DNA of 64,000 bases, taken from the sequence record OQ427096.1; one strand, 5' to 3'. The position numbers and the translations under genes were made by a program. The notes below the pieces were generated by a model. It worked only from the letters and a program-made list of their open reading frames with translations, did no database searches and was not told the origin of the DNA. Below, piece after piece: positions 11,979 to 23,260 of the stretch. Numbering within the stretch: the first letter of the stretch is position 1; every line of letters starts with the position of its first letter.

Positions 11979-12051
11979 ACGCAACATGAAGTAACAGGCG
12001 CGCAGCAACGAAGCTGACGCGACGTTCTTTAAAAACAAAGATTCAAGTTAT

Positions 12052-12127
12052 ACGTCGTTAGTTCAATTGGCAGAACACCAGCCTCCAAAGCTGGGTGTTG
12101 AGGGTTCGAGTCCTTCACGGCGTGCCA
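12052..12127 (+). tRNA. tRNA-Trp(CCA)
   Basis: Cloverleaf, loop CT-CCA-AA, encoded CCA. Confidence 0.95.
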
Positions 12128-12135
12128 AGTTTTAT

Positions 12136-12211
12136 GTCTGGGTAGCAAAACGGCAAATGCGCTGGCCTGCAAAGCCATGAGGTGCGAGTTCGATTCTCGC
12201 CTCAGACTCCA
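12136..12211 (+). tRNA. tRNA-Cys(GCA)
   Basis: Cloverleaf, U73, CCA. Confidence 0.93.
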
Positions 12212-12221
12212 AGTTTTATAT

Positions 12222-12299
12222 CTGTGTGTAGCTCAGTCTGGTTAGAGTACTCGCTTTGGAAGCGAGTGGTCGTTGGTTCGAATCCAACCACGCAGACCA
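12222..12299 (+). tRNA. tRNA-Pro(TGG)
   Basis: Cloverleaf, C1-G72, A73. Confidence 0.95.
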
Positions 12300-12307
12300 A
12301 GTTTTAT

Positions 12308-12401
12308 CCCGTTGTATCCCCAGACGCTACGAACGTCTACAAAGGTAACTGGAGTGGTGTCAAAAGCACTGATGCAGGTTCGAATCCTGTCGACGGGTCC
12401 A
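12308..12401 (+). tRNA. Non-canonical tRNA-Arg(ACG)-like RNA, rearranged D/anticodon region
   Basis: Acceptor CCCGTTG/CGACGGG+T+CCA and T-arm GGTTCGAATCC intact; AGACG-CTACGAA-CGTCT hairpin follows the acceptor directly. Confidence 0.7.
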
Positions 12402-12496
12402 AACAGTTCTCGGACTTAAACCGAGTGGTGGAGGATAAACTGAGAAATCAGTGAATCCCTTGACGAGATGGAGTCATTAACTCGATCGAGAATTTT

Positions 12497-12571
12497 GGGC
12501 TGCTCGTATAATGAGTATTACACCTGCCTTGCACGCAGGGAATCGGAGTTTGATTCTCCGGCGGTCCACCA
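12497..12571 (+). tRNA. tRNA-Ala(TGC), atypical
   Basis: G3-U70, loop CT-TGC-AC, T-loop TTTGATT. Confidence 0.85.
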
Positions 12572-12577
12572 AAACTT

Positions 12578-12653
12578 GGGGCCTTAGCTCAGATGGGAGA
12601 GCAGGTGCTTTGCAAGCATCAGGTCATCGGTTCGATCCCGATAGGCTCCACCA
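12578..12653 (+). tRNA. tRNA-Ala(TGC)
   Basis: Canonical, G3-U70. Confidence 0.96.
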
Positions 12654-12664
12654 AGTTTAGATAT

Positions 12665-12749
12665 GCCCTGTTGGTGGAATTGGTAGACACGCATCCTTGA
12701 GGTGGATGTGCTGAAAGGCGTGAGGGTTCGAGTCCCTTGCAGGGTACCA
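12665..12749 (+). tRNA. tRNA-Leu(GAG)
   Basis: Type II cloverleaf. Confidence 0.95.
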
Positions 12750-12776
12750 AACAAGACTGTTCAATCAGTCGAACGA

Positions 12777-12855
12777 GTTGGAAGGTCGGGTTCGAATCCC
12801 GAAGTGATGACGTCCGGATTAGGTCATCATTTGGTGTAGTGGGCAGCACGCCGAT
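12777..12855 (+). ncRNA. Circularly permuted tRNA-like module (Y RNA/YrlA-like)
   Basis: Order is T-arm (TCGGG-TTCGAAT-CCCGA), loop-closed 9-bp acceptor-like stem, D-arm, closing stem GTTGG/CCGAT. Confidence 0.6.
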
Positions 12856-13063
12856 ACATTAAAAGGTTGCGCAGAAGTGTGCTTCATTTAGACTGTGAAC
12901 ACAGTCAGGCAAGTCGATCAAAAGACGCGCCGACAAGCCCGAAGCGAGTTCTTCGGCTAAGAAGGAAAGACATCGTTTCCTACTTGTAACGACAAGTCCT
13001 TAGAGGATGAAGTCTCCGTTAGTCGGACGCCTGAGAGTGGCGAAAAGGATTCTTCGGTATTTC

Positions 13064-13137
13064 GGGTTGCAAGCATTAAGGTGATGCAGGAGGCTTTTAA
13101 CCTTCAGAACAGGGATCGTTACCCTGGCGACCCACCA
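13064..13137 (+). tRNA. tRNA-Lys(TTT)
   Basis: Loop CT-TTT-AA; T-loop ATCGTTA. Confidence 0.88.
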
Positions 13138-13145
13138 AGTTTTAA

Positions 13146-13221
13146 GCCCCGTTGGCTCAATTGGCAGAGCAGCTGTTTTGTAATCAGCAGGTTGGGAGTT
13201 CGAGTCTCTCACGGGGCACCA
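13146..13221 (+). tRNA. tRNA-Thr(TGT)
   Basis: Cloverleaf, CCA. Confidence 0.93.
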
Positions 13222-13229
13222 AGTTTTAA

Positions 13230-13303
13230 GCGGGTATGGTATAGTGGTTGTGCCCTAGCCTTCCAAGCTAGAGAGACGAGTTCGATCCTCGTTACCCGCT
13301 CCA
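13230..13303 (+). tRNA. tRNA-Gly(TCC)
   Basis: Cloverleaf, U73. Confidence 0.95.
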
Positions 13304-13314
13304 AGTTTTACGAT

Positions 13315-13392
13315 GCATCTGTCTGCTAATTGGAATAGGCAACGATCCTTTCAAGTTCGGGAATGCGGGTTCGAGTCCCGTCAGATGCTCCA
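13315..13392 (+). tRNA. tRNA-Glu(TTC), atypical
   Basis: Loop CT-TTC-AA, one stem mismatch, U73. Confidence 0.82.
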
Positions 13393-13398
13393 AGTTTT

Positions 13399-13473
13399 GC
13401 TCCACTCGTCTAGTGGCTAGGATGACACCCTTTCAAGGTGTAGAAGAGGGATCGAAACCCTCGTGGAGTGCCA
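13399..13473 (+). tRNA. tRNA-Glu(TTC)
   Basis: Cloverleaf, G73. Confidence 0.93.
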
Positions 13474-13479
13474 AATTAT

Positions 13480-13556
13480 GCGTCTGTAGCTCAACAGGAT
13501 AGAGCATCCGGCTTCTACCCGGATGGCTGAGGGTTCGAGTCCTTCCAGGCGCGCCA
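13480..13556 (+). tRNA. tRNA-Arg(TCT)
   Basis: Cloverleaf, CCA. Confidence 0.95.
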
Positions 13557-13566
13557 AGTTTCAAAT

Positions 13567-13652
13567 GGATAGGTGGGCGAGTGGTTTATGCCAGCAGACT
13601 GTAAATCTGCCGCTTAATTGCATCGTTGGTTCGAATCCAACCCTATCCACCA
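13567..13652 (+). tRNA. tRNA-Tyr(GTA)
   Basis: Canonical type II. Confidence 0.96.
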
Positions 13653-13659
13653 AGTTTAT

Positions 13660-13750
13660 GTGTCTGCTGTCGGGTTGGAGGACGGCACCGGGCTGTAACC
13701 CCGGATCCTCAAAAGGGACGTAGTAGGTTCGAATCCTACCAGGCACACCA
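13660..13750 (+). tRNA. tRNA-Tyr(GTA), atypical D-arm
   Basis: No U8; extended D-stem CTGTC/GACGG; long variable arm. Confidence 0.8.
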
Positions 13751-13758
13751 AGTTATAT

Positions 13759-13834
13759 GGTTCCTTAGCTCAGTTGGTAGAGCAACGCTTTTACAAGGCG
13801 AAGGTCGTGGGTTCAAGTCCCTCAGGAACTACCA
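13759..13834 (+). tRNA. tRNA-Val(TAC)
   Basis: Cloverleaf, CCA. Confidence 0.92.
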
Positions 13835-13848
13835 AACGTTGAAACAGG

Positions 13849-13876
13849 TTGTGTAGAAAACAGCTTGGTATACAAT
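13849..13876 (+). promoter_or_regulatory. Promoter of the large ncRNA
   Basis: TTGTGT-N16-TACAAT; paralog of the 11951 block. Confidence 0.75.
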
Positions 13877-13884
13877 AAGCAACA

Positions 13885-14795
13885 TGAAGCAACGTCCAGA
13901 CCACTGAAGAGTCGCCGGGACGATAAACAAAGGCACGAAACGTCGAGAGGCACAAAACATTAGCCTCGTGAGACGTCTGGTCTAGCAACTCAATTGTCGA
14001 AAGGCGATTGTTTAGGAATACGGTACAGTGATGTGCCTAATGGATTAAACGCCCACAAGCGGTCCGCCAGAGATGGTTCCTCTAGAACAAGTCGACATAG
14101 TGCAGCCGAAAGGTTGGCGTCTAGTATCCCTAGGCGATATGTGGAGGCTCAGTGAGACACGAGATTCAGGTCCAATGCCGAATGGTGAGGATTTGATCGT
14201 TTAGCGACGGTAGTGTTTCGGCTTAGCGGCAACTGACTCCAAGGACATTGAATCGGCAGGTACGTAGTTCAAGCCTTAGCGGGTAAGGGCGAGTATCAGG
14301 TCAGACGGACTAATGTTCGTACTGTATCACTCGGACGTAGGCTTAGCGGCTGAAACGAGAGGAGGTCGGGTAAGAAGCTGTCGCCCAAAAGGCTATGGAC
14401 TTACGAACCTGCTCGACCTTAGTGGGCTTTCAACTTTGACGGTTAATCAAAACTACGAAAAACGCAAAGTCAGGTTCGGTCGTAAGTGAAAGTGGCTTAA
14501 TCGTTGACACGAAAGTGAATCAACGCAATTTGAGGCTCGCAAGGCTGATGATTGTCTATCAGGAAGTGCACCTAAGAGGAAGCCCCTCTGAATGGCTCGC
14601 AAGGTCAAGGGAAACGGGAAGGTAGAGTAGCTTACGATGACAGAGGAAACGCCACCTCTTTAAACTAGGCAGCCATGACGGTTAACAATGATGCATCGAA
14701 AGATGGTTGTTGTGGAAAAGTTGGGAAGGGCTCCGCAAGAGCTGATAATCCAAACGAATGAATCGTCTCGTCAGACTGTATTCTCAGGTCGACAC
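13885..14795 (+). ncRNA. Large structured ncRNA, GOLLD-like
   Basis: ~0.9 kb without a convincing ORF inside a tRNA array; long helix 14399-14411/14471-14487; repeated CTTAGCGG and GGCTCGCAAGG hairpins; 3' GTATTCTCAG. Confidence 0.7.
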
Positions 14796-14858
14796 TTTGT
14801 TTCAAGGAGTTGTATTCCTCAAACGCTTCAATTGAAGTTTTTGCGAAATGCAATTTTT

Positions 14859-14936
14859 GGTCCCATAGTTTACGATTGGTTAGAACTCCCGCCTCTCAAG
14901 CGGAAGAATCGGGTTCGACTCCCGATGGGACTGCCA
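14859..14936 (+). tRNA. tRNA-Glu(CTC)
   Basis: Cloverleaf, G73. Confidence 0.93.
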
Positions 14937-14944
14937 AGTTTTAT

Positions 14945-15148
14945 ACGCGTGTAGCTCAGTGGCGACGATAAGTTCAAAGACGGTAGGCATACTGTCACGC
15001 AGAGCGAGTCGAGGATTGGCGATACGACTGTGACGATACGAAGGTGGAGCTCGAGATCCTAGCTCCGACAATAACGGTACGGTCAACATTCGAGAGCGCC
15101 GGGTAGATAACCCGGAGGTCAGTGGTTCGATTCCATTTTCGCGTACCA
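14945..15148 (+). tRNA. tRNA-Ile(GAT)-like RNA with ~125-nt insertion in the D-loop
   Basis: D-stem GCTC (14954-57)/GAGC (15094-97) separated by 136 nt; anticodon arm CCGGG-TAGATAA-CCCGG; T-arm; ACCA. Confidence 0.72.
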
Positions 15149-15176
15149 TATAAGTAGAGTAGTACAAAAGTTTTAT

Positions 15177-15253
15177 CCGGGTTTAGCTCAGTCTGGCAGA
15201 GCACGCCGTTTGGGGCGGTGAGGTCGTAGGTTCGAACCCTGCAACCCGGACCA
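15177..15253 (+). tRNA. tRNA-Pro(TGG), second copy
   Basis: Cloverleaf, C1-G72, A73. Confidence 0.93.
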
Positions 15254-15267
15254 ATTAGAGAAGTGTT

Positions 15268-15507
15268 ATGGAAACTTTAGAAACGAAAGTGACACGTCTA
15301 GGCAATGGGCTTTATGGATGCAGGATCATCAGGTCAGCTGACAAGAAGCCAATTGTTGAATTAAGAGTTGAAAAGTCTCAGATTAGGAATGCTATGTTTG
15401 ATATGCTCCGAACTCTAGACAAGCTGGGATATGATAGTCCTATGGCACATGCTTCGCGACATCGCGGTAAGGCTTGTGTCACAGACTCGAAATATATCTG
15501 GCATTGA
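15268..15507 (+). CDS. Hypothetical protein within tRNA array
   Basis: ORF fills the gap between two tRNAs. Confidence 0.7.
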   Translation: METLETKVTRLGNGLYGCRIIRSADKKPIVELRVEKSQIRNAMFDMLRTLDKLGYDSPMAHASRHRGKACVTDSKYIWH

Positions 15508-15512
15508 TTTAT

Positions 15513-15598
15513 TCTGGACGCGCCTAATGGGGAGGCACCGGGCTGTTAACCCGGCGATAGAAATATCCGACACGGTTCGATTCCGTGGTCCAGAGCCA
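15513..15598 (+). tRNA. tRNA-Asn(GTT) with long variable arm
   Basis: Loop CT-GTT-AA; GATA-GAAA-TATC extra arm; G73. Confidence 0.85.
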
Positions 15599-15604
15599 AG
15601 ATAT

Positions 15605-15680
15605 GGATTACAGGCCAACTGGTGTAGGCATGCAGCTGTTAACTGCAGATTGTTGAGTTCGATTCTCAAGTAGTCCTCCA
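15605..15680 (+). tRNA. tRNA-Asn(GTT), U73
   Basis: Cloverleaf with atypical discriminator. Confidence 0.85.
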
Positions 15681-15688
15681 AAACAAAC

Positions 15689-15763
15689 GGTCTATTAGTC
15701 TATGGGTTAAGATGCTGGCCTGTCACGCCGGCGTAACGAGTTCGAGCCTCGTATAGACCGCCA
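15689..15763 (+). tRNA. tRNA-Asp(GTC)
   Basis: Cloverleaf, G73. Confidence 0.93.
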
Positions 15764-15770
15764 AACAAAT

Positions 15771-15850
15771 CGGGATAGGGACTGCTAGGTGTGGTCGCCG
15801 GACTGTCAATCCGGAGAGTCAGACGGATTCGAATTCCGTTATCCCGACCA
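15771..15850 (+). tRNA. tRNA-Asp(GTC), atypical (C1-G72, A73)
   Basis: Loop CT-GTC-AA; Pro-like acceptor end. Confidence 0.82.
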
Positions 15851-15857
15851 AGTCAGT

Positions 15858-15930
15858 GGCGTCCTCTTCGGAGATAGTGAAGTGAGGTAAAGTACTCAAT
15901 GCTCACGGAACGAATAATCAGACGCCTCCA
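15858..15930 (+). ncRNA. CCA-terminated mini-RNA 1
   Basis: GGCGTC/GACGCC stem + T + CCA; internal hairpins; no T-loop. Confidence 0.5.
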
Positions 15931-15943
15931 AAATTGAGAATGA

Positions 15944-16017
15944 TGCGCGGTCGTATAACGGCAGTATACTGGGCTCATAACCCGGAGATGGAGGTTCGAT
16001 TCCTCCCTGCGCTACCA
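15944..16017 (+). tRNA. Initiator tRNA-fMet(CAT)
   Basis: 1:72 mismatch, three G-C pairs in anticodon stem. Confidence 0.9.
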
Positions 16018-16042
16018 AATGGTCAGGCTCATGACCTAACTC

Positions 16043-16100
16043 TGTGAGTATGATAAGCTTTCATGAGGCTGTCGGGACTTAACTGTTCAACTCACAACCA
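16043..16100 (+). ncRNA. CCA-terminated mini-RNA 2
   Basis: Perfect 7-bp TGTGAGT/ACTCACA + A + CCA; 58 nt. Confidence 0.55.
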
Positions 16101-16106
16101 ATCAAC

Positions 16107-16182
16107 GGGTCCGAAGCTCAAATGGCAGAGCAACTGGTTCTTACCCAGTAGGAAGTCGGTTCGATCCCGACCGGACCCACCA
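16107..16182 (+). tRNA. tRNA-Lys(CTT)
   Basis: Cloverleaf, CCA. Confidence 0.93.
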
Positions 16183-16188
16183 AACTAT

Positions 16189-16228
16189 GCGCTCGAGCAG
16201 CCGAAAGGAAGTAGCCGAGGGCGCACCA
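16189..16228 (+). ncRNA. CCA-terminated mini-RNA 3 (40-nt minihelix)
   Basis: GCGCTC/GGGCGC + A + CCA, capped by CC-GAAA-GG. Confidence 0.5.
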
Positions 16229-16234
16229 AACAAT

Positions 16235-16323
16235 GGACTCGTTCCCGTAGTTGGTCGAACGGAGCGGACTCTTAATCCGACGGCGAAAGCCCATCGCAGG
16301 TTCGAATCCTGCCGGGTCCACCA
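16235..16323 (+). tRNA. tRNA-Lys(CTT) with long variable arm
   Basis: Loop CT-CTT-AA; GGC-GAAA-GCC extra arm; Tyr/Leu-like D-arm. Confidence 0.85.
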
Positions 16324-16336
16324 AAATGAGATAGAT

Positions 16337-16615
16337 ATGCCGAAGTACAATTTCAAGTGTAGCGAATGTGAGCACCGCGGTGATGTCTGGACCGGCGATA
16401 CTGAAAAGGTCGACGTGGACTACAAAGACGTAGAGTGCCCTGGTTGTGGAAAAAAGACCTACAACTATGCTCCTTGGGATTCAGGTGCTACATCTCAGTC
16501 ATGGGGCCATGTGAAGCCTACAACGCTAGGAAGGCAGAAGGCTCCTCAGGATTTTAGAAACTTCCTGACACAGATTAAGAAGGCACATCCAGGTTCAACA
16601 ATCCGCGATCATTGA
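16337..16615 (+). CDS. FmdB-like zinc-ribbon protein
   Basis: MPKYNFKCSEC..CPGCG. Confidence 0.8.
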   Translation: MPKYNFKCSECEHRGDVWTGDTEKVDVDYKDVECPGCGKKTYNYAPWDSGATSQSWGHVKPTTLGRQKAPQDFRNFLTQIKKAHPGSTIRDH

Positions 16616-16631
16616 TCAAAAAGGTGTTGCG

Positions 16632-16841
16632 ATGTACGTGTATCAAACTTATTATGACTACACCGAAACATATTGTCATCCGAATCCTGAGCAATGGTCG
16701 GAAGAAAGGAAAGTTCTGTGTACTACTCTAGACGAGAGCTTGGCGCAAGAAGTTGCAGCCAAGCACAACGCTGAGAGCAAGGCACACAGGTGGTATAAAG
16801 AATATGCGAGAGTTGAGAAGTTTGAATTGACCTCGCGATAA
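16632..16841 (+). CDS. Hypothetical protein
   Basis: AAGG RBS, ORF 69 aa. Confidence 0.65.
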   Translation: MYVYQTYYDYTETYCHPNPEQWSEERKVLCTTLDESLAQEVAAKHNAESKAHRWYKEYARVEKFELTSR

Positions 16842-16849
16842 AGAATCGC

Positions 16850-16924
16850 TGTTCAGTAGCTCAGTTGGTAGAGCGGCTGCCATTTAGGGCGGCAGGTCGT
16901 GGGTTCGAGACCCACTTGGACGTT
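16850..16924 (+). pseudogene. tRNA-like element with 8-nt anticodon loop, no encoded CCA
   Basis: Canonical D- and T-arms; loop CATTTAGG; wobble-rich acceptor. Confidence 0.65.
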
Positions 16925-17002
16925 AAGCGCTAGGGCGAATTTAAAGTACTCACATACTAGTCCGAGACAGTATCGCCCGGATCCTATAATTGTCAGCAGG
17001 TA

Positions 17003-17482
17003 ATGGTCATGCAGAAGAAAATTGACGTGAAAGCAGTCGAGGCGTTCATGCAGACGCAGAGCCCTGAGACAAAAGTTTATCTTGGAGCAGACTCCGAGAA
17101 GGTAAAAATCAATGGTAAGATGTACGCGGATTACACCGTCGTCATCGTTGTTCACATTGATGGTTGTAAGGGTTGTAAGGTATTCGCCGAGACAACTCGT
17201 GAGGAAGACTACGATAAGGACCCTTCAAAGCCGTTCACTCGGATGATGAAGGAAGCTGAAAAGGTAGCCGAGCTTCACGATCGTTTCAAGGACACCTTCT
17301 ACGACTTCGAGGTTAGTATTCACCTCGACATCAACCCGAAGAAGACGGCAGGTTCAAGTATCGCAATGGAAGCGGCACGTGGTTACGTCAAGGCGATGAC
17401 CATGGTTGATCCTCACTTGAAGCCTGTAGCATTTGCTGGTTCTTATGCTGCGGATCGCGCTAAAGAACTTGGTATGTGCTAA
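17003..17482 (+). CDS. RNase H-like protein, YkuK family
   Basis: VYLGADS..RMMKEAE..IHLDINP..KP.AFAGSYAAD. Confidence 0.88.
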   Translation: MVMQKKIDVKAVEAFMQTQSPETKVYLGADSEKVKINGKMYADYTVVIVVHIDGCKGCKVFAETTREEDYDKDPSKPFTRMMKEAEKVAELHDRFKDTFYDFEVSIHLDINPKKTAGSSIAMEAARGYVKAMTMVDPHLKPVAFAGSYAADRAKELGMC

Positions 17483-17489
17483 GAGATAT

Positions 17490-17575
17490 GCCCCTGTAGG
17501 CGAATTGGTATAGCTACTGGCCTTAGAAGCCAGCGCCGAAAGGCATTGACGGTTCGAGTCCGTCCAGGGGTACCA
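17490..17575 (+). tRNA. tRNA-Leu(TAG)
   Basis: Type II cloverleaf. Confidence 0.95.
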
Positions 17576-17582
17576 AATATGT

Positions 17583-17658
17583 GTCGGAGTAGCTCAGTTG
17601 GTAGAGCGGTAGCTTGAAAAGTTACGCGTCGCAGGTTCGATTCCTGTCTCCGATACCA
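17583..17658 (+). tRNA. tRNA-Phe(GAA)
   Basis: Canonical. Confidence 0.95.
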
Positions 17659-17661
17659 AAA

Positions 17662-17697
17662 CACCGTCACTCAGGTCCCTCGGTGCAAAATAAGGGA
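17662..17697 (+). ncRNA. H-type pseudoknot 1
   Basis: S1 CACCG/CGGTG, S2 TCCCT/AGGGA, no L2, A-rich L3. Confidence 0.55.
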
Positions 17698-17721
17698 ATA
17701 CTCAGGAGAGGAGATTGTAGT

Positions 17722-17907
17722 ATGAAGTTGCCTTCGCGTTTTCAAATCGGTGATAAGGTTCTCGCTGGTCGTCTTGATGGTGGGAGCAAAGGTGAAGTAA
17801 TTGGTGTACACTTCAACCGATACAAAGTATCGTATGATGTGGTCGACGAGTTGACCCAACGTACAAAGAAGCACCTCAGTGAACGGGTTCATCCTGTCAC
17901 AGAGTAA
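17722..17907 (+). CDS. Small SH3-like hypothetical protein
   Basis: GGAG RBS; FQIGDKV..GEVIGV. Confidence 0.7.
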   Translation: MKLPSRFQIGDKVLAGRLDGGSKGEVIGVHFNRYKVSYDVVDELTQRTKKHLSERVHPVTE

Positions 17908-17927
17908 ATACAGATATAAGACAATTT

Positions 17928-18002
17928 GCATCGTTAGCTGAGATGGATTAGCGCTTGCCTGAAGAGCTCGAGAGGTTGGTTCGATACCAACACGATGCAC
18001 CA
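17928..18002 (+). tRNA. tRNA-Phe(GAA), atypical
   Basis: Two mismatches in anticodon stem; CCA. Confidence 0.78.
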
Positions 18003-18017
18003 AACAAAGGAACGTGA

Positions 18018-18266
18018 ATGAGCTTTAAGCCGGTTAATACTTTCGTCATCGTAAAGCGTAGGGAAGAAGATACAACGAGTCAGGGAGGCATCATCATCTC
18101 TGGATCAGTTGATCATAACCTCTTCACTGTTGTGGCCAAGAATGATCTTGTGACATTCGTTGAGCCCGGTGATACGGTAGTAATCAACATTCGCGAAGCA
18201 GCTGAAATCGACGATGTACATTACGCAGTTGATGCAAAGCACATCTTCACCAAGGTTTCTAAGTAA
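18018..18266 (+). CDS. groES: Co-chaperonin GroES-like (gp31-like)
   Basis: FKPVNTFVIVKR..T.SQGGIII..VEPGDTV. Confidence 0.8.
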   Translation: MSFKPVNTFVIVKRREEDTTSQGGIIISGSVDHNLFTVVAKNDLVTFVEPGDTVVINIREAAEIDDVHYAVDAKHIFTKVSK

Positions 18267-18275
18267 GACAGTTTT

Positions 18276-18352
18276 GCCCAGGTGACGGAATTGGTATACG
18301 TACTGTCCTCAGAAGGCAGGTTTTGAGGGTTCGAGTCCCTCTCTGGGTACCA
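18276..18352 (+). tRNA. tRNA-Leu(CAG), short variable loop
   Basis: Leu-type D-loop, 5-nt variable region, A73. Confidence 0.88.
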
Positions 18353-18362
18353 AAGTTTCAGT

Positions 18363-18440
18363 GTTCCACGTGTCGGAATTGGTAGACGAGCCAGACTGTG
18401 AATCTGGAGTTTGCGGGTTCGAGCCCCGTCGTGGTCCCCA
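18363..18440 (+). tRNA. tRNA-His(GTG)
   Basis: G-1:C73; mismatches at pairs 1-2. Confidence 0.85.
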
Positions 18441-18449
18441 AAGTTGATC

Positions 18450-18476
18450 AGGTGATTCGCCACCTTAGAGTGCGAA
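18450..18476 (+). ncRNA. H-type pseudoknot 2
   Basis: S1 AGGTG/CACCT, 1-nt L1, S2 TTCGC/GCGAA. Confidence 0.6.
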
Positions 18477-18486
18477 ATTGAAATAT

Positions 18487-18561
18487 TGCCTGTTAGCTCA
18501 GTGGTAGAGCAATCGCCCGATAAGCGATAGGTCGTCAGTTCGATCCTGACACGGGCAACCA
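18487..18561 (+). tRNA. tRNA-Ile(GAT), C33
   Basis: Loop CC-GAT-AA. Confidence 0.92.
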
Positions 18562-18565
18562 ATAA

Positions 18566-18639
18566 GCCTTCATAGCTCAAAGGTAGAGCACTCGCCCGAT
18601 AAGCGATAGACCTAGGATCGTTACCTAGTGAAGGCACCA
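18566..18639 (+). tRNA. tRNA-Ile(GAT), C33, second copy
   Basis: Loop CC-GAT-AA; T-loop ATCGTTA. Confidence 0.88.
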
Positions 18640-18641
18640 AA

Positions 18642-18832
18642 CCGTTGACGAAACAGCGTAAGGGCGCTAAAGTAGTACGCAACAAGGTATTCTAGTTGGA
18701 GCCTTGCAAAGAGCCGGACTGTTAAAGGTTGCGGCGAGACTAGATTGGTAGCTTAATTAGCTTACGGTGCATCATATGTTGCTAGGGTATGATGACTCAG
18801 AAGCCTTCGGGAACCCTTAACTTAGCTACAAA
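18642..18832 (+). ncRNA. Putative structured ncRNA
   Basis: TCTAGT/ACTAGA, GTAGCT/AGCTAC and CATCATA/TATGATG helices; no ORF. Confidence 0.45.
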
Positions 18833-18838
18833 TTCTAT

Positions 18839-18916
18839 AGCCCAGTCGTTTAGTTGGTCCAAGACGCCGTCCTTTGAAGTCGGTCATCGTAGGTTCGAAT
18901 CCTACCTGGGTTGCCA
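18839..18916 (+). tRNA. tRNA-Gln(TTG)
   Basis: Cloverleaf, G73. Confidence 0.92.
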
Positions 18917-18923
18917 AGTTTGA

Positions 18924-18997
18924 TGCCTCTTAGTTCAATGGTAGAATGTCGCTCTCTGAAAGCGAAGACAACGGATCGATACCGTTAGAGGCTGCCA
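18924..18997 (+). tRNA. tRNA-Gln(CTG)
   Basis: Cloverleaf, G73. Confidence 0.92.
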
Positions 18998-19002
18998 AAT
19001 AT

Positions 19003-19295
19003 GGGACTGTGCCGGATAGCTCCCGGACATTATGATGTGAGTAGGTTAGCCTGACTAGGGTGTTTGGTGCATCAGGCACCATCTGAAAGACTAATCCAAA
19101 GTTGATTGATGCAGGTCCCGCCAGATGCAAAAGTAAGACTAGCCGTTCAAGTCGGTAAGCACATGGTGTGCACCATGCCGCGTTAGGTGTGGAGGAGGCG
19201 TTCGAATCGTCGGTGGTTGCCAGGCCCCTATAGACACTGCTTGCAAGAGGGATTTAAAGTAACCAAATGAGGTCGCTCCTCGCGGAACAGTTCCC
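19003..19295 (+). ncRNA. Putative ~290-nt ncRNA containing a tRNA-like domain (19137-19222)
   Basis: Ends GGGACTGT/ACAGTTCCC pair; internal D-loop, fully paired CATGGT-GTGC-ACCATG arm, TTCGAAT loop, GCCA. Confidence 0.45.
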
Positions 19296-19310
19296 TCGGT
19301 ACTATTCTAT

Positions 19311-19422
19311 GAAGGTTGTAGCTCAAAGGTAGAGCGCCGGGTGTCGGACCCGGGTCAAAGAGTATGAAGTTCGCGCGAACTGTCTGCTCAGGTGCAGGAG
19401 TCGAAGCCTGCCAGCCTTCCCA
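19311..19422 (+). tRNA. Non-canonical tRNA (TCG) with ~40-nt variable arm
   Basis: Acceptor AAGGTTG/CAGCCTT, G-1:C73, loop TG-TCG-GA, 8-nt T-loop, CCA. Confidence 0.65.
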
Positions 19423-19442
19423 CTAATTGATAATTAGAGACG

Positions 19443-19727
19443 ATGAGACAGTTTAACCTTCGAGGTAAGAAGACATATCGTCCTGGCTGTGGTTGTTGCG
19501 TTGTTGAAAACTTCAAGCCAGAAATCATTGACAAGATTCACGCATACGAAATGCGTAATCCAGATGAATTCGCTCTCACAGCAGACGATTTCGATTGTGT
19601 AGAAGATTTTCTCATTTATATTGATGTTCCCGTTGACCAAGTTTGTTATGATAGTTCACACTGCGCTCCCTTCGAAGGCAAGGAAGAAAGCCAAGAAGAA
19701 GGTTGTACCGACAAGGACGCCAGTTAA
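19443..19727 (+). CDS. Hypothetical protein (CGCC motif)
   Basis: ORF after the tRNA-like element; overlaps next ORF by 80 nt. Confidence 0.5.
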   Translation: MRQFNLRGKKTYRPGCGCCVVENFKPEIIDKIHAYEMRNPDEFALTADDFDCVEDFLIYIDVPVDQVCYDSSHCAPFEGKEESQEEGCTDKDAS

Positions 19728-19971
19728 GAAGTTCGTTGAAAAGAAACGACAGTTCATTCCCAAGATCCCCGTTTACCGTGCAGCAGGAACCGAGCACATC
19801 CGATCCCATGGATTGGAGAAGGTGCCGCCTAAACTGGAACGTCCAATCGTGTATCATGGTGATATGGCTGAACGTGAAGCGGCTGCTCAAGATCAAATTG
19901 AGTACCGCGAGCATTTGGTTAGAAACGCTTTCCGTAACGGGAAGGTATCGGCATGCTACATTTCAGGATGA
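19648..19971 (+). CDS. Basic hypothetical protein
   Basis: MIVHTALPSKARKK; lysine-rich. Confidence 0.65.
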   Translation: MIVHTALPSKARKKAKKKVVPTRTPVKKFVEKKRQFIPKIPVYRAAGTEHIRSHGLEKVPPKLERPIVYHGDMAEREAAAQDQIEYREHLVRNAFRNGKVSACYISG

Positions 19972-19974
19972 CCT

Positions 19975-20205
19975 ATGAATACTGTGATTGAAAAGACTGA
20001 CAAGGGTGTGATCAAAGGCGCGGTGTTCATCGTCGCCGGCGATAGGCATTGGGTTGAGGGTAATGTCTACGGCAACCCCAACTTCAAGGATGGCACCTAT
20101 ATCCACACGTCCAAGATTGTTGCAGTTCGTGGACGCCGCATTGAAACCCTGAACTCGTTCTACACTTGCGAGTTCCACGTTGATGGACCTGTTCGCCTAT
20201 GGTAA
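19975..20205 (+). CDS. Hypothetical protein
   Basis: GNVYGNPNFKDGTYIHTSKIV..IETLNSFY, common phage motif. Confidence 0.75.
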   Translation: MNTVIEKTDKGVIKGAVFIVAGDRHWVEGNVYGNPNFKDGTYIHTSKIVAVRGRRIETLNSFYTCEFHVDGPVRLW

Positions 20206-20519
20206 CCCAAGTTCGTATTCTGATTGATGAGTGTGGTGCACCTCTGGATTCCATTGTTGAAGTGACCGAAATCTTGGATGATGGTCACATCATGTATACC
20301 TGGGAAGACATCACCTTCATGGCTTCACCGGAAGCCTGGGCATTGCATTATCCGGATTCTGCATATGGATATGATTCTCAGAGCGCTGGCACAGACATCA
20401 ACTACGAGATTTTGAGAAACGCCGCTGAGCAATTCTTGGTGTTTGTTGAGGAAGAAAAACTCGACGAAGCTGCCATTGATTACTTCTACGACGTGTTCAA
20501 GGAAACTCTCGGTAAGTAG
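20199..20519 (+). CDS. Acidic hypothetical protein
   Basis: Coupled ORF. Confidence 0.7.
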   Translation: MVTQVRILIDECGAPLDSIVEVTEILDDGHIMYTWEDITFMASPEAWALHYPDSAYGYDSQSAGTDINYEILRNAAEQFLVFVEEEKLDEAAIDYFYDVFKETLGK

Positions 20520-20526
20520 AAATATT

Positions 20527-20618
20527 GGAGCGTAACTCAGCCAGGTGGCTGACGCTGTTTGCTAAACAGTTGGGACCCTATGAACGGGTCTGGGGATCGA
20601 GACCTCTGCGCTCCGCCA
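20527..20618 (+). tRNA. tRNA-Ser(GCT)
   Basis: Type II, G73. Confidence 0.93.
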
Positions 20619-20632
20619 ATTTGGATTTGATC

Positions 20633-21151
20633 ATGAAAATCGTGCTGCTTGATCTTGAGCAAACTGTGATCGACGACTGGGAGCACATGAACCTGCTTCC
20701 AGGAAACCTCGATAAGATTCGCTGGGCAATTCAGCACACTGGCTGTAAGCTGGGATTGATGTCCTGGGCTGTATGGAATGAGGTGGACAAAGAGACGTTC
20801 AAGAAGCGCCTGCAAGGTCCACTCGAAGAAGTGCTTGGTATGAAGTTCTCCGAAGATCTTATCTTCTCCATGCACGACTTCTCAGACATAATTCTTAAGC
20901 GACGTCGGAAATGGCTTAGCCGTGATGATATGTTCGACCTGTTTGGCAAGGAAGAGTGTCTACTCCAGCTGCTGAGGCTTGAACACTTCGGAAAGAATGC
21001 TCGCGTTACTCTGATTGATGACGTGGTTGATCACAACATGGAATTCACCAAAGGCGCTTCCAAGGTGCGTTTCATCAACGTGACCAATCCTCAGTACAAG
21101 CATTGGAATATCAATGAAACTGTCCATGACTATGGCAGTTGGAGAGAATGA
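20633..21151 (+). CDS. HAD-superfamily-like protein
   Basis: KIVLLDLEQTVID (DxDxT-like) and LIDD. Confidence 0.6.
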   Translation: MKIVLLDLEQTVIDDWEHMNLLPGNLDKIRWAIQHTGCKLGLMSWAVWNEVDKETFKKRLQGPLEEVLGMKFSEDLIFSMHDFSDIILKRRRKWLSRDDMFDLFGKEECLLQLLRLEHFGKNARVTLIDDVVDHNMEFTKGASKVRFINVTNPQYKHWNINETVHDYGSWRE

Positions 21152-21510
21152 TGGAAGAACTTGCTCCTCAGAAAGGCAATATGCCTGACAGCTTCATCCT
21201 CGTTCGTACATCTGCAGGCGTTCATGTGCTTGGTGGTTGGAGCGGTGGCTATCTCTACGGCGATAGCTGGCGTCTCAGCACTGCATTGAAGCGCGTAGTT
21301 GAGTACGATGGTGATTGGGTAGTTGTTGAAACAAGATCAGGTTCGACCTATGCCCTACCGACACAAGCAGCCATTCGCCGTTATACTTTGACTGTGACGA
21401 CTTCGGGCGTGTTTAACTCGTTCGACCGTCAGGCAAAGGAACAAGGAATCCTCTTTGAAGCGATTCCGGAATCCGAATTCAACGATGTAATCAACCAACT
21501 GGAAAATTGA
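21148..21510 (+). CDS. Conserved phage hypothetical protein
   Basis: VLGGWSGGYLYGDSWRLS..SGSTY. Confidence 0.8.
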   Translation: MMEELAPQKGNMPDSFILVRTSAGVHVLGGWSGGYLYGDSWRLSTALKRVVEYDGDWVVVETRSGSTYALPTQAAIRRYTLTVTTSGVFNSFDRQAKEQGILFEAIPESEFNDVINQLEN

Positions 21511-21512
21511 TC

Positions 21513-21737
21513 ATGAGCAATGCTAAGCTGCAACGTCTGGAAGAAGAGCTGTATGAAAAGCTGCGCGAGATTCAGGATGTCGCTGTAGAGACGAACACCC
21601 CGTTCTCTTTCTCCATCAACTACCATACCTATGATGTGTTCCTCCCGGATCATGAAGATGAAGACATGGTAGAATATCTCAAGGAAGAAGTTGGTGTTGA
21701 AGTTGGTGATTGGGTCAGCTCTAGCGATCGTTGCTAA
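21513..21737 (+). CDS. Acidic protein, W-x-S-S..C family (5)
   Basis: Ends GDWVSSSDRC*. Confidence 0.8.
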   Translation: MSNAKLQRLEEELYEKLREIQDVAVETNTPFSFSINYHTYDVFLPDHEDEDMVEYLKEEVGVEVGDWVSSSDRC

Positions 21738-22213
21738 TGAGAATTGACACTGACCTCTATGAGTTGGTGGAAGGTAGACCAGACGCAGCTTCCATGCTCG
21801 TCTGGGCTGCATCACTGCTCGGGCTAAACGACGTTCCTGAGTCCGAGGAAGTTGAAGCTGCAATTGGTATCTTTGAGGATGCTCGAGAGCAGATCATCGA
21901 GAAACGTGCTAAGGATCGTTTGACCGATATCGTTCGCTACATTGTCCCTCCTCAGTACGATAAAAAATGGGACAAGCGCACGTCGAAGCATCCTGACATT
22001 CCTCGTAATTGGTGGAATGGAGCATTCGTAAAATCGTTTGGCTGGACCAAAGATAGCTTCATTGTTGAAGTTAGTTCCTACGTCGGCAACAACGAGTATG
22101 ATGGGACAACGATTGAGATTCCTCAACATCTCGCTGACGTAAAGAACTTCAATTGGAACCTGCAAGATAAGATTCCTCTTATTGACGCATTCCTAAAAGC
22201 AGCCAACCGCTAA
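21737..22213 (+). CDS. Hypothetical protein
   Basis: TAATG coupling. Confidence 0.7.
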   Translation: MRIDTDLYELVEGRPDAASMLVWAASLLGLNDVPESEEVEAAIGIFEDAREQIIEKRAKDRLTDIVRYIVPPQYDKKWDKRTSKHPDIPRNWWNGAFVKSFGWTKDSFIVEVSSYVGNNEYDGTTIEIPQHLADVKNFNWNLQDKIPLIDAFLKAANR

Positions 22214-22224
22214 ATATCACGTAA

Positions 22225-22313
22225 GGATTGTTAACCAACCGGGGAGTTGGCACCGCTTCGAAAGCGGTAGGTGCCCGAAAGGGCATGGGGATCGAGACCT
22301 CAGCAATCCGCCA
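22225..22313 (+). tRNA. tRNA-Ser(CGA)
   Basis: Type II, G73. Confidence 0.93.
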
Positions 22314-22319
22314 AACAAT

Positions 22320-22406
22320 GGACAGTAAACTAGCCGGGGAGCTAGCGCCGACTTGAAATCGGTAGGCACGTAATGGTGTGGGGATCGAAACCTCTGCTGT
22401 CCGCCA
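22320..22406 (+). tRNA. tRNA-Ser(TGA)
   Basis: Type II, G73. Confidence 0.93.
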
Positions 22407-22420
22407 AACAAGGAAAGATT

Positions 22421-22825: not shown

Positions 22826-22836
22826 ATAGAACATAT

Positions 22837-22923
22837 GGACAGTAATCTGGCTTGGTAGTCAGCACCGCTTGGAAAGCGGTTGGTACCGAAAGGTATGGGA
22901 TTCGATTTCTCTGCTGTCCGCCA
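22837..22923 (+). tRNA. tRNA-Ser(GGA)
   Basis: Type II, G73. Confidence 0.93.
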
Positions 22924-22936
22924 AATAAGGCGAACG

Positions 22937-23131: not shown

Positions 23132-23196
23132 CACAGTGGCAGTGCACCTCATTGGTAATGAGGAGGTCGTCGGTTCGATCCCGACTAAGGGCACCA
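23122..23196 (+). tRNA. tRNA-Thr(GGT)
   Basis: Cloverleaf, CCA. Confidence 0.95.
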
Positions 23197-23260
23197 AATA
23201 AAGGAAATGGATATGACTGATACGACAAGCTTCACCGCTGTTGGCGAAGGTTAAAAATCT

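Follow-up and report, generated by a model that had tools for sequence, protein, structure and literature searches.

D-armless mitochondrial tRNA-Ser(AGY) is the case described by the extended anticodon stem model, and circularly permuted and split tRNA genes (Cyanidioschyzon, Nanoarchaeum) carry their segments out of the standard order and yield a mature tRNA that is a normal cloverleaf after processing. For bacterial systems, one report (PMC11551756) states that all tRNAs are cloverleaves. Here, we analyzed a window of 64,000 nucleotides from Xanthomonas phage X1 (OQ427096.1), in which a rewired tRNA-like element occupies positions 12308–12401, inside an array of 37 tRNAs. The observation is real, and all of the sequence features given in the preliminary description were confirmed at their coordinates; type A and its sister type, type B, are groups of relatives of the element.

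12308–12314, + strand: 5′ strand of the acceptor stem (tRNA positions 1–7), CCCGTTG, pairing with CGACGGG at 12391–12397 over 7 bp, one of them G.U
12315–12316, + strand: U8 and A9 (TA), invariant in type A, with TA imposed in the free-linker scan
12317–12319, + strand: positions 10–12 (TCC), predicted 5′ strand of the D-stem substitute, with pairs T10-G47 (12354), C11-G38 (12345) and C12-G37 (12344) from covariation
12320–12321, + strand: C13 and C14, unpaired, forming the 5′ half of the internal loop that separates the D-stem substitute from the anticodon stem (12317–12321 reads TCCCC)
12322–12338, + strand: anticodon arm AGACG-CTACGAA-CGTCT, a perfect hairpin, with loop CUACGAA at 12327–12333 and anticodon ACG at 12329–12331
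12339–12343, + strand: ACAAA, 3′ side of the internal loop, varying in relatives (AGTAA, AGAAA, CCAAA, others); 12339–12353 as a whole is ACAAAGGTAACTGGA
12344–12345, + strand: G37 and G38, predicted partners of C12 and C11 from covariation
12346–12353, + strand: D-loop-like bulge UAACUGGA (U39–A46), in which A12347 corresponds to A14, A12348 to R15, G12351/G12352 to G18/G19 and A12353 to A20
12354, + strand: G47, predicted partner of T10 from covariation, directly after the D-loop-like bulge and closing the nested helix
12355–12371, + strand: predicted optional variable arm TGGTGT-CAAAA-GCACTG, with compensatory changes in BUDD and in a metagenomic allele
12372–12373, + strand: A65 and U66, the latter corresponding to Y48, the Levitt partner of A15 (A12348), with A..T in 97 of 98 type-A members
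12374–12390, + strand: T arm GCAGG-TTCGAAT-CCTGT, from sequence and family covariation
12391–12401, + strand: acceptor 3′ strand CGACGGG, discriminator U73 and encoded CCA (T + CCA at 12398–12401)

Compared with the canonical tRNA-Arg(ACG) of Stenotrophomonas phage DLP_6 (KU682439.2 112740–112813), the element has the same CUACGAA loop, a 7-bp acceptor stem, a 5-bp T stem with a TTCGAxT loop, an encoded CCA and U8, and both possess a D-loop-type A-R-Y-N-G-G-A with A20, and R15/Y48. The acceptor stem, the T stem with its T-loop consensus, the discriminator with CCA and the 5-bp/7-nt anticodon arm are those of a canonical tRNA. The arms do not follow the cloverleaf sequence of acceptor, D, anticodon, variable and T. 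In the element the anticodon arm precedes the D-loop sequence and begins at position 15, as against 27 in a normal tRNA, a D hairpin is lacking, the partners of positions 10–12 flank the D-loop-like bulge, and only 7 nt or a variable arm separates the nested helix from the T stem. Unlike in permuted and split tRNA genes, both ends are those of a normal tRNA and it is the interior that is rearranged, and the non-cloverleaf order must therefore persist in the mature RNA.

The resemblance to D-armless mitochondrial tRNA-Ser(AGY) (PMC9427863, on human mitochondrial tRNA structure) extends to the lack of a D hairpin, the short acceptor connector, the lengthened anticodon helix and the conserved acceptor/T domain. 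The phage family differs in keeping the full D-loop-like sequence (A14, R15, G18G19, A20) as a bulge, together with R15-Y48, and therefore probably retains elbow and core contacts that are absent in the mitochondrial tRNA. This D-loop-like octamer, retained 3′ of the anticodon arm, sets the element apart from the D-armless mitochondrial type, and the family occurs in bacterial viruses with a putative Arg or Ile identity, whereas the mitochondrial tRNA is specific for Ser. As in class II tRNAs (Leu, Ser, bacterial Tyr), the X1 hairpin at 12355–12371, which has a 4–6-bp stem and a small loop of unconstrained sequence, occupies the stretch from the final D-stem-type pair to Y48. Arg, however, belongs to the class I identities, and the variable arm is optional in the phage family.

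Relatives were sought by pattern scans in which the anticodon was left free, and by a free-linker scan in which the linker was freed and the CTACGAA loop was fixed. Genuine relatives emerged from the anticodon-free scans, in bacterial genomes and metagenomes as well as in viral contigs; the free-linker scan matched at least 120 viral contigs, with all tRNA hallmarks carried by 111 of the 114 new matches listed, and a descriptor scan gave 154 distinct elements. The sources are viral contigs (>120), metagenomes, genomes of Alphaproteobacteria, Bradyrhizobium, and four cultured phages: X1 and BUDD on Xanthomonas, DLP_6 and RAS14 on Stenotrophomonas. Blastn against GenBank phages returned close relatives only, which leads to an underestimate of host range among phages in culture. 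The element is most likely one member of a large family, not annotated before, that resides in tRNA arrays of phages and mobile elements.

Covariation scores in the family were 0.71–0.86, against 0.19–0.27 for shuffles (0 of 500 reached the observed values) and at most 0.14 for slid controls. All seven acceptor pairs are 99–100% paired, with double changes, and the anticodon stem shows 100% pairing, each of its five pairs having double changes. CCA is encoded in all 98 type-A members, in which the discriminator is U (64), G (25), A (7) or C (2). The UAACUGGA motif was fixed by the type-A scans, and the invariance of TAAC-N-GGA and CTACGAA is partly imposed by the search; in type B, which supports the motif independently of the type-A scan, GG never varies, nor does the TA before it, and GG is followed by A except in the Ile member (GGT). 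A covariance model built on 45 relatives, with X1, BUDD, DLP_6 and RAS14 left out, scored the X1 element at 67.2 bits (E 7e-18) and the best canonical tRNA in the window at 32.7 bits, which places the element well outside what chance would produce. The preliminary description placed the ACG hairpin inside the D-arm and named a lack of conservation in homologs as refuting it; the arrangement proved to be conserved in some 150 distinct relatives, with covariation in all helices, and the ACG hairpin lies 5′ of the D-loop-like sequence, nested in the pairing that replaces the D-stem. The wiring has been kept through compensatory mutations in more than 150 relatives, and therefore looks like that of a working non-cloverleaf tRNA.

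The anticodons found match an Arg identity. In the descriptor scan, the 139 members with GGA carry ACG (104), TCT (24), TCG (7) or CCT (4), all of them Arg anticodons, while the 8 members with GGT carry the Ile-type anticodons TAT, GAT or CAT and have discriminator A. The bacterial identity sets, taken from Table 1 of PMC9976931, are A20, C35 and U/G36 for Arg and U20, A73, A37 and A38 for Ile, and the GGA/GGT split matches the identity elements A20 (Arg) and U20 (Ile). The Arg set A20, C35, U/G36 is present in X1, where A12353 is position 20 by analogy. The anticodon arm has a 5-bp stem and a 7-nt loop with U33 and a purine at 37 (A37); the loop, identical to that of the canonical DLP_6 tRNA-Arg(ACG), contains U33-A34-C35-G36 as in TadA substrates. 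TadA requires only the anticodon arm. Which loop decodes, left unclear at first, is answered in favor of the ACG loop, which has U33 and A37 and, among its relatives of the GGA group, carries only Arg anticodons despite search patterns free of any anticodon.

The element starts 8 nt past the CCA of tRNA-Pro, after the spacer AGTTTTAT, which also follows tRNA-Trp and tRNA-Cys, in keeping with the regular array spacing, and across the family it always sits among ordinary tRNAs. The X1 array covers all 20 amino acids, with UCU as its only canonical Arg tRNA, and CGT, CGC and CGA make up 75% of the Arg codons in the window. In the neighborhood of the 174 loci that carry an ACG element, canonical Arg tRNAs comprised TCT (48), CCT (25), CCG (24), TCG (7) and ACG (2), so that the ACG element is predicted to fill a gap in the Arg tRNA set; it is not always the sole ACG tRNA, as DLP_6 also carries a canonical tRNA-Arg(ACG), as do 2 of the 174 loci. 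Among public RNA runs no infection transcriptome was found, the matches being contigs from wastewater libraries (probably DNA) and one 165-nt contig of depth 29 from a transcriptomic run, which covers 12321–12485 and is weak evidence for expression, as it may be DNA or an unprocessed precursor.

On these comparisons the X1 element is most likely a functional tRNA-Arg(ACG) gene of non-cloverleaf form, decoding CGU, CGC and CGA. It would be co-transcribed with the rest of the array, after which RNase P and 3′ processing would trim the transcript. Pairs 10-47, 11-38 and 12-37, the internal loop and the 5-bp anticodon stem would stack in about 10 layers, like the canonical D-stem, position 26 and anticodon stem, while the bulge would make the U8-A14, A15-U48 and G18G19-T-loop contacts, and the L shape would therefore be kept with a different strand connectivity. 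The nucleotides for U8-A14, R15-Y48 and G18G19/T-loop contacts are all present, their invariance in type A being partly imposed by the scan, and we infer a three-dimensional arrangement with a bulged D-loop. Host ArgRS would charge the element via A20 (A12353) and C35/G36, host TadA would turn A34 into inosine, and the inosine-bearing element would then read CGU, CGC and CGA, the bulk of the phage Arg codons. We speculate that use of this scaffold may reflect resistance to host enzymes that attack or recognize the canonical tRNA body. In its broadest form, which we offer tentatively as one possibility, the proposal is of a natural class of non-cloverleaf adaptors in bacterial translation, with the anticodon arm threaded into the D-arm and the L shape rebuilt; this class would have become established for Arg, with Ile following secondarily, as a structural counter-defense, keeping synthetase recognition (position 20 and anticodon) while hiding from or resisting host factors that read the junction of D-stem and anticodon stem, such as tRNA-targeting defense nucleases.

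A mimic that does not decode, acting as a decoy, sponge or regulator on a host anticodon nuclease, TadA or ArgRS, is in our estimate unlikely. It would undergo tRNA-like processing and present the anticodon stem-loop of a tRNA-Arg. Such an RNA would explain the identity of the anticodon loop with the canonical Arg-ACG loop, and a non-redundant role is hinted at by the presence in DLP_6 of both a canonical Arg-ACG tRNA and the element. X1 also encodes a polynucleotide kinase, an enzyme typical of phages that fight tRNA nucleases, and this too fits a mimic. Phage tRNAs are known to counter tRNA-targeting defenses, as described in PMC10264068, PMC11464382 and PMC12445682, which lends the mimic further plausibility. 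However, a decoy for a nuclease or TadA needs no covarying 7-bp acceptor stem, encoded CCA, conserved T loop or A20/U20 switch that tracks the anticodon, and it needs no full set of Arg isoacceptors (ACG, TCG, TCT, CCT) on one scaffold. A canonical Arg-ACG tRNA is missing from 172 of the 174 neighboring arrays, which fits replacement better than addition.

Another reading is an Arg-charged adaptor working outside the ribosome, for example one that supplies aminoacyl groups to a phage transferase acting on protein, a cell-wall precursor or DNA, with the rewired body tying it specifically to that enzyme. ArgRS identity elements are indeed kept on an unusual body, and a viral enzyme is reported to carry out tRNA-dependent DNA hypermodification (PMC13219725). 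We nevertheless consider this improbable: no candidate transferase linked to the element was found, the neighbors are always ordinary tRNAs, the anticodon arm retains the complete decoding form (U33, R37, 5-bp stem), and several Arg anticodons with an Ile group on one scaffold look like a decoding set.

In the proposed functional non-cloverleaf tRNA, a nested helix stands in place of the D-stem. Comparative analysis shows positions 10, 11 and 12 paired with G47, G38 and G37, and UAACUGGA therefore bulges from the 3′ strand of this helix, which runs on across a small internal loop into the anticodon stem. In an alignment of 46 relatives, pair 10-47 takes the forms UA, AU, GC, CG and UG, 11-38 the forms CG, GC and UA, and 12-37 the forms CG, GC and AU. 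Across the 98 type-A members, 11-38 is CG in 92, GC in 3 and UA in 3, while 12-37 is CG in 94, GC in 2, AU in 1 and A.C in one (L096). Compensatory events at these two pairs are few within type A (some 5–7 independent ones), and much of the weight for them lies in the homology with type B, where the homologous helices are 100% paired with 2–3 pair types each (GC/CG/AU) and R15-Y48 covaries (GC 15, AU 1). Positions 13-36 and 14-35 are mostly C.A in relatives. Nearest-neighbor energies disfavor the three nested pairs (–16.3 kcal/mol with them, –23.0 without), the minimum-free-energy fold of X1 (–27.0, z –0.94) differs in structure from the nested model, and RNAalifold on the relatives returned the three main helices only. 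Two other registers were tried and dropped: N10-N′47 with C11.A46, C12-G45 and C13-G44, in which changes at 11/12 from the free-linker scan proved to be compensated at 38/37 and not in GGA, and C12-G38/C13-G37/Y14-A36, which is worse, with pairing in 89, 87 and 20 of the 98 members, respectively.

The preliminary description had read the same nucleotides as a cloverleaf with arms swapped or inserted, in which a D-stem of TCC (10–12) and GGA (44–46) encloses the ACG hairpin and the hairpin at the normal position is possibly the decoder. Its topology stands, with an extra hairpin and a nested anticodon arm, whereas its TCC/GGA pairing falls on covariation, and we now regard this cloverleaf as very improbable. 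In X1 alone the two strands are complementary, with a fold of –22.1 kcal/mol, and the CC/GG part could form in 92–94 of 98 relatives. Yet 10-46 is unpaired in 42 of 98 relatives (23 of 46 in alignment A4), and among those 46 no compensatory change occurs anywhere in the helix; changes at 11/12 are uncompensated against GGA, with three T11 leaving only a T.G wobble, whereas all of them but one (A.C, L096) are compensated at 38/37. In type B, the linker varies (CGG, CCG, CGA, CAG, CCC) while GGA is constant.

The second hairpin speaks against that cloverleaf as well, for it is absent in most members and lacks the features of an anticodon loop. It is found in 23 of 98 type-A members and missing from about three quarters of the family: all 23 long-form members have a hairpin of 3–6 bp here, and members of 78–84 nt have none. 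Where present, its loop has 4–6 nt of any sequence, without anticodon-loop features. The X1 stem had been drawn as AGTG/CACT; its register is TGGTGT/GCACTG with loop CAAAA, which BUDD and a third allele, from metagenomic contigs, preserve through compensatory changes while disrupting the one first drawn. A hairpin is thus present at the normal anticodon location, as first described, and its role as an anticodon arm is ruled out by its absence in most members and its free loop sequence; the second hairpin (48–64) is an optional variable arm. Nor is the element an intron-containing tRNA gene, as no Rfam intron matched it, and deleting either hairpin leaves short-form members without an anticodon arm.

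Standard tools pass over the element. ARAGORN calls none of the 174 elements, and RF00005 did not match the X1 element either at the gathering score or, once the clan filter was applied, at E≤10. In a search of 12290–12500 with Rfam 15 at E≤10, the only match was a weak one to tRNA-Sec (RF01852), at 18.2 bits (E 0.26), below the family score of 47 bits; tRNA-Sec has an 8/5 or 9/4 acceptor/T arrangement, a 6-bp D stem and a UCA anticodon, and the X1 element has 7/5 acceptor/T and an ACG anticodon. All four GenBank records of the cultured phages leave it unannotated. A decaying pseudogene, or chance hairpins between two tRNA genes, would account for the silence of ARAGORN, Rfam and GenBank annotators and for a fold z-score of only –0.94, but has next to no probability given that over 150 distinct relatives exist, that each helix shows compensatory changes, that CCA is encoded throughout and that the leave-out score is 67 bits.

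If the element is charged and decodes, it is a natural and widespread exception to the statement that all tRNAs of bacterial systems are cloverleaves, and would test how much of the tRNA core is needed by the ribosome, EF-Tu, RNase P, ArgRS, IleRS and TadA. Under the same condition, tRNA finders systematically miss the tRNA for the commonest Arg codons, and tRNA complements, codon-adaptation analyses and statements about a ‘missing isoacceptor’ are therefore wrong for many phages and arrays. The A20/U20 switch on a common non-canonical scaffold would then be a natural experiment on identity elements, and the scaffold a candidate chassis for orthogonal or nuclease-resistant tRNAs and a lead on the phage-host conflict over tRNAs. 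Cultured systems for testing are provided by X1 and BUDD on Xanthomonas and by DLP_6 and RAS14 on Stenotrophomonas.

Neither Rfam nor the literature covered, which took in few subscription journals, yielded an account of a tRNA of this kind, and term searches of PMC7609411, PMC8421152 and PMC9976931 found none either. A tRNA of engineered non-canonical fold has been evolved to work in E. coli (PMC11551756); it is artificial and poses the same question, whether bacterial translation takes a non-cloverleaf adaptor, to which the phage family would be a natural counter-example. The allo-tRNAs and other 8/4 or 9/3 tRNAs from metagenomes and phages (Mukai et al., 2017, PMC5389517; reviewed in PMC7609411) are likewise natural non-canonical tRNAs found by mining and partly phage-borne. 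They keep the arm order of the cloverleaf and alter helix lengths only, whereas the element alters the arm order. Separately, X1 carries a candidate 8/4-like tRNA of its own at 22837–22923.

The window corresponds to bases 124001-188000 of Xanthomonas phage X1 (OQ427096.1), with 100% identity across the 2.9 kb compared. The element at 12308-12401, a proposed non-cloverleaf tRNA-Arg(ACG) gene, lies in an array of 37 tRNAs (12052-23337, ARAGORN) in which all 20 amino acids are represented. It begins 8 nt past the CCA of tRNA-Pro, and the spacer preceding it, AGTTTTAT, is also found behind tRNA-Trp and tRNA-Cys. ARAGORN made no call at 12308-12401, nor did Rfam at gathering score; at E<=10 the only Rfam match over the element was to tRNA-Sec, at 18.2 bits against a 47-bit threshold. 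The site carries no annotated feature in the GenBank records of X1, of its closest relative, Xanthomonas phage BUDD (96.7%), or of phages DLP_6 and RAS14. The preliminary description had read the element as a cloverleaf with an ACG hairpin inside the D-arm, and every feature that it listed was found in the X1 sequence.

Features read in the element in X1, and the GOLLD RNA of the same array
12308-12314 and 12391-12397, + strand: acceptor stem, CCCGTTG / CGACGGG
3' of the acceptor strand, + strand: linker, TA then TCCCC
12322-12338, + strand: anticodon hairpin, AGACG-CTACGAA-CGTCT
Between the ACG hairpin and the second hairpin, + strand: ACAAAGGTAACTGGA
3' end of the element, + strand: T arm, GCAGG-TTCGAAT-CCTGT, then T-CCA
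14361-14790, + strand: GOLLD RNA (Rfam RF02032, 179 bits, full length), within the tRNA array between tRNA-Val and tRNA-Glu(CTC)

Blastn placed the element in the cultured phages X1, BUDD, DLP_6 (Stenotrophomonas; long form) and RAS14 (short form). A first pattern scan, CCC-N7-T-NNN-R-N6-ACAAAGGTAAC-N-GGA with the anticodon left free, matched 20 viral, 8 bacterial genome and 43 metagenome contigs, the genome matches including Bradyrhizobium sp. BR13661 and several Alphaproteobacteria MAGs. Acceptor stem, T arm and CCA all fitted in about 42 distinct sequences; the remaining matches lacked tRNA features and were plain chance. The second scan, GTA-N10-CTACGAA-N12-TAAC-N-GGA, which freed the linker and the bases 5' of TAAC, reached at least 120 viral contigs, and among the matches listed 111 of 114 new loci were genuine, representing 63 distinct sequences. 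Because the search patterns fixed TAAC-N-GGA, together with CCC/ACAAAGG or CTACGAA in one scan each, the invariance of these motifs is partly by construction; all covariation claims come from positions left N. A covariance model based on 45 relatives, with X1, BUDD, DLP_6 and RAS14 excluded, scored those four phages at 64-75 bits (E<=5e-17) and the best canonical tRNA at 32.7 bits.

The main helices were assessed in 42 members. The acceptor stem was 99.3% paired with double changes in 7/7 pairs, the anticodon stem 100% paired with double changes in 5/5, and the T stem 98% paired with double changes in 4/5; the covariation score was 0.731, whereas shuffles gave 0.197 (0/500 reached the observed score) and slid controls no more than 0.133. 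All three stems looked alike in another sample of 46 members. These results indicate that the acceptor, anticodon and T helices are under selection, and the homolog search proposed in the preliminary description bore out the arrangement, which is kept in relatives. RNAalifold independently returned exactly these three and put the anticodon stem at columns 15-19/27-31, which leaves no D hairpin between it and the acceptor stem.

What replaces the D stem was resolved by covariation, with bases numbered along the element. The D-stem pairing first suggested, TCC (10-12) with GGA (44-46), did not survive: among 98 distinct sequences of the X1-like relatives (type A), 10-46 was unpaired in 42 and changes at 11 and 12 were uncompensated, and in alignment A4 this helix was 78% paired with no double changes. 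An intermediate scheme, N10-N'47 plus CC/GG of GGA, was overturned by the free-linker type A scan and by pairing in a sister set of rewired elements (type B). In type A, base 11 paired with the base directly 5' of TAAC in 98/98 sequences (CG 92, GC 3, UA 3), and base 12 with the next base upstream as CG 94, GC 2, AU 1 and A.C 1; the nested helix 10-47, 11-38, 12-37 showed double changes in 3/3 pairs in A4.

D-stem substitute of the element in X1 (covariation; loop and bulge from the pairing model)
12317/12354, + strand: T10.G47
12318/12345, + strand: C11-G38
12319/12344, + strand: C12-G37
C13 C14 opposite A32-A36, + strand: internal loop
12346-12353, + strand: bulged octamer U39-A46, between the partners of 11 and 10

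Type B, found by model R1 at 39-56 bits in the same arrays, where ARAGORN is silent on it, and enlarged by a further scan, has the layout acceptor - TA - N10 N11 - S1S2S3 - (n) - anticodon arm - 2 to 12 nt - S3'S2'S1' - T - A R Y (N) G G A - N11' N10' - TGAAAAY - T arm. In 16 sequences the outer pairs (GC 12 / AU 3 and CG 10 / UA 6), the S helix (CG 16; GC 9 / CG 4 / AU 3; GC 10 / AU 4 / CG 2) and R15-Y48 (GC 15 / AU 1) were 100% paired throughout (covariation score 0.855 versus 0.273). The linker varies in type B and GGA is constant; GGA is therefore not the linker's partner, and we read it as the equivalent of G18-G19-A20. Type A itself offers few compensatory events (~5-7 independent); support for the nested helix therefore comes from their agreement with one another and from the homologous type B helix, which covaries richly. 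Type B tRNA-Arg(TCT/CCT/TCG) loci include L004:458-539(-), L011:7927-8008, L072:3882-3964(-) and L076:895-976(-), among others; in some arrays the type B gene lies between tRNA-Cys and tRNA-Arg(CCT), at the place taken by a canonical tRNA-Arg(TCT) in sister arrays.

The preliminary description left it unclear which loop, if either, decodes. The second hairpin was rejected as decoder, being present in only 23/98 type A members (the 90-96-nt form) with a loop of free sequence. In each of these 23, a hairpin of 3-6 bp with a loop of 4-6 nt separates N'47 from the final A-U; type A members of 78-84 nt have ~7 nt there, typically GGAAGAT. In X1 the register is TGGTGT/GCACTG with loop CAAAA, and it is kept through compensatory changes in BUDD and in a third allele from metagenomic contigs (T12358C, T12360C, A12368G). 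Relative to X1, BUDD has a single acceptor change (G.U to A-U) and five in this hairpin (GTGT-CAAAA-GCAC to GCTC-CAAAA-GAGC), the five amounting to two compensatory double changes plus a G.U to G-C; the rest of the element is identical. The second hairpin is an optional variable arm.

The loop of the ACG hairpin, CUACGAA, carries U33 and A37 and exactly matches that of the annotated canonical tRNA-Arg-ACG of DLP_6, which favors it as the decoding loop. A structure descriptor (acceptor stem, T arm, TA at 8-9, early anticodon hairpin, D-loop-like motif) run over all fetched loci gave 154 distinct elements, with about seven evident false positives. Those with Arg anticodons (ACG 104, TCT 24, TCG 7, CCT 4) all had GGA, i.e., A after G18G19, and those with Ile-type anticodons (TAT 4, GAT 2, CAT 2) all had GGT and discriminator A; since the loop was fixed in one scan, ACG is overcounted, and the non-ACG anticodons came from anticodon-free scans or bystander elements. 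The existence of Ile-type members (L039:4640-4721, L095:2525-2604, and others in L081, L084, L093 and L095; CCA often not encoded) means that the scaffold is not restricted to Arg. According to an identity review (PMC9976931), bacterial Arg identity comprises A20, C35, U/G36 and N73 A/G/U, with A20 as the main ArgRS determinant, and Ile identity comprises U20, A73, A37 and A38. The GGA-Arg/GGT-Ile split agrees with these published sets and so points strongly, if indirectly, to RNAs made for aminoacylation, with A12353 acting as A20.

The only canonical Arg tRNA of X1 is UCU, and CGT (31%), CGC (29%) and CGA (14%), the codons that an ICG anticodon reads, together make up 75% of Arg codons in the window ORFs. 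Across 174 loci with an ACG element (median 14 tRNAs per fetched stretch), ARAGORN called none of the elements, and the canonical Arg tRNAs nearby were TCT 48, CCT 25, CCG 24, TCG 7 and ACG only 2, a scarcity that holds within the fetched +/-5-10 kb rather than genome-wide. From this codon demand and this scarcity, the element would usually supply the ACG isoacceptor of its array, not always exclusively; DLP_6 (L212), a case beyond those 2, has an unannotated rewired Arg-ACG at 59-151 and an annotated canonical tRNA-Arg-ACG at 1641-1714, 1.5 kb downstream.

In the proposed and probable three-dimensional arrangement, the 5' strand would lead unbroken from position 10 to the anticodon stem. Pairs 10-47, 11-38 and 12-37, two layers from the internal loop and the five pairs of the anticodon stem would make a stack of about ten layers, as many as canonical tRNA has from 13-22 to 31-39. 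The octamer bulge would rise so that A14 pairs with U8, A15 with U48 and G18G19 docks on the T loop, presenting A20 to ArgRS in the variable pocket. EF-Tu and RNase P recognize chiefly the acceptor/T domain and elbow, TadA the anticodon arm; all of these are intact in the element. Thermodynamic models do not reproduce the arrangement: the three nested pairs cost energy (-16.3 versus -23.0 kcal/mol), and the minimum-free-energy fold of X1 is another structure. Public RNA runs yielded no infection transcriptome. A 165-nt contig (depth 29) from one transcriptomic run covers 12321-12485 and nothing else of 12000-12800, joining the 3' part of the element to the spacer, and is compatible with, though not proof of, a transcribed precursor; pieces of the region in wastewater 'RNA-Seq' libraries are probably DNA.

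Phage tRNAs counter tRNA-cleaving defences (PMC10264068, PMC11464382, PMC11555353, PMC12445682). Two annotated X1 genes suggest that the phage has RNA repair and 7-deazaguanine pathways.

Annotated X1 genes
36402-37289, + strand: polynucleotide kinase
48197-48703, + strand: 6-pyruvoyl-tetrahydropterin (QueD-like) synthase

As a speculative reading, a body that keeps synthetase recognition and alters the D-stem/anticodon-stem junction could escape tRNA-cleaving enzymes. The element falls outside the canonical cloverleaf family and also differs from the D-armless mitochondrial type. No Rfam 15 family covers it, and full-text searches of an incomplete body of literature, which may miss an earlier description, found no tRNA of this topology; term searches of a non-canonical tRNA review (PMC7609411), a tRNA-array paper (PMC8421152) and the identity review likewise found no mention of it.

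At 22837-22923 (+; 87 nt) the array has a tRNA-like gene without an ARAGORN or Rfam call or a GenBank annotation. Its acceptor stem has 8 bp, its D stem 6 bp (4-nt loop) and its T stem 4 bp; the variable arm is long and CCA is encoded, an 8/4 'allo-tRNA'-like shape (cf. PMC5389517). The anticodon in the loop UUGGAAA is GGA (Ser). Long variable arms also occur in tRNA-Asn(GTT) (15513-15598, +, 86 nt) and tRNA-Lys(CTT) (16235-16323, +, 89 nt), against expectation for class I identities; each adjoins a normal-length copy with the same anticodon, and anticodons are also duplicated for Ala, Glu, Tyr, Asp, Phe and Ile. The tRNA at 16850-16923 (+) has an abnormal anticodon arm (6-bp stem/6-nt loop or 5-bp stem/8-nt loop), a 2-base anticodon per ARAGORN and the label 'tRNA-OTHER' in GenBank. 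The 95-nt spacer 3' of the element (12402-12496, +) is kept in BUDD, folds better than shuffles (z -2.99) and contains the hairpin CTCGG-ACTTAAA-CCGAG. Between tRNA-Pro and the element, BUDD (L002, ~1372-1476) has a 97-nt insertion, absent from X1, that carries a small ORF containing two CxxC motifs (MRSRSCKHCSHVMWDDVRVCPRCGRPNR).
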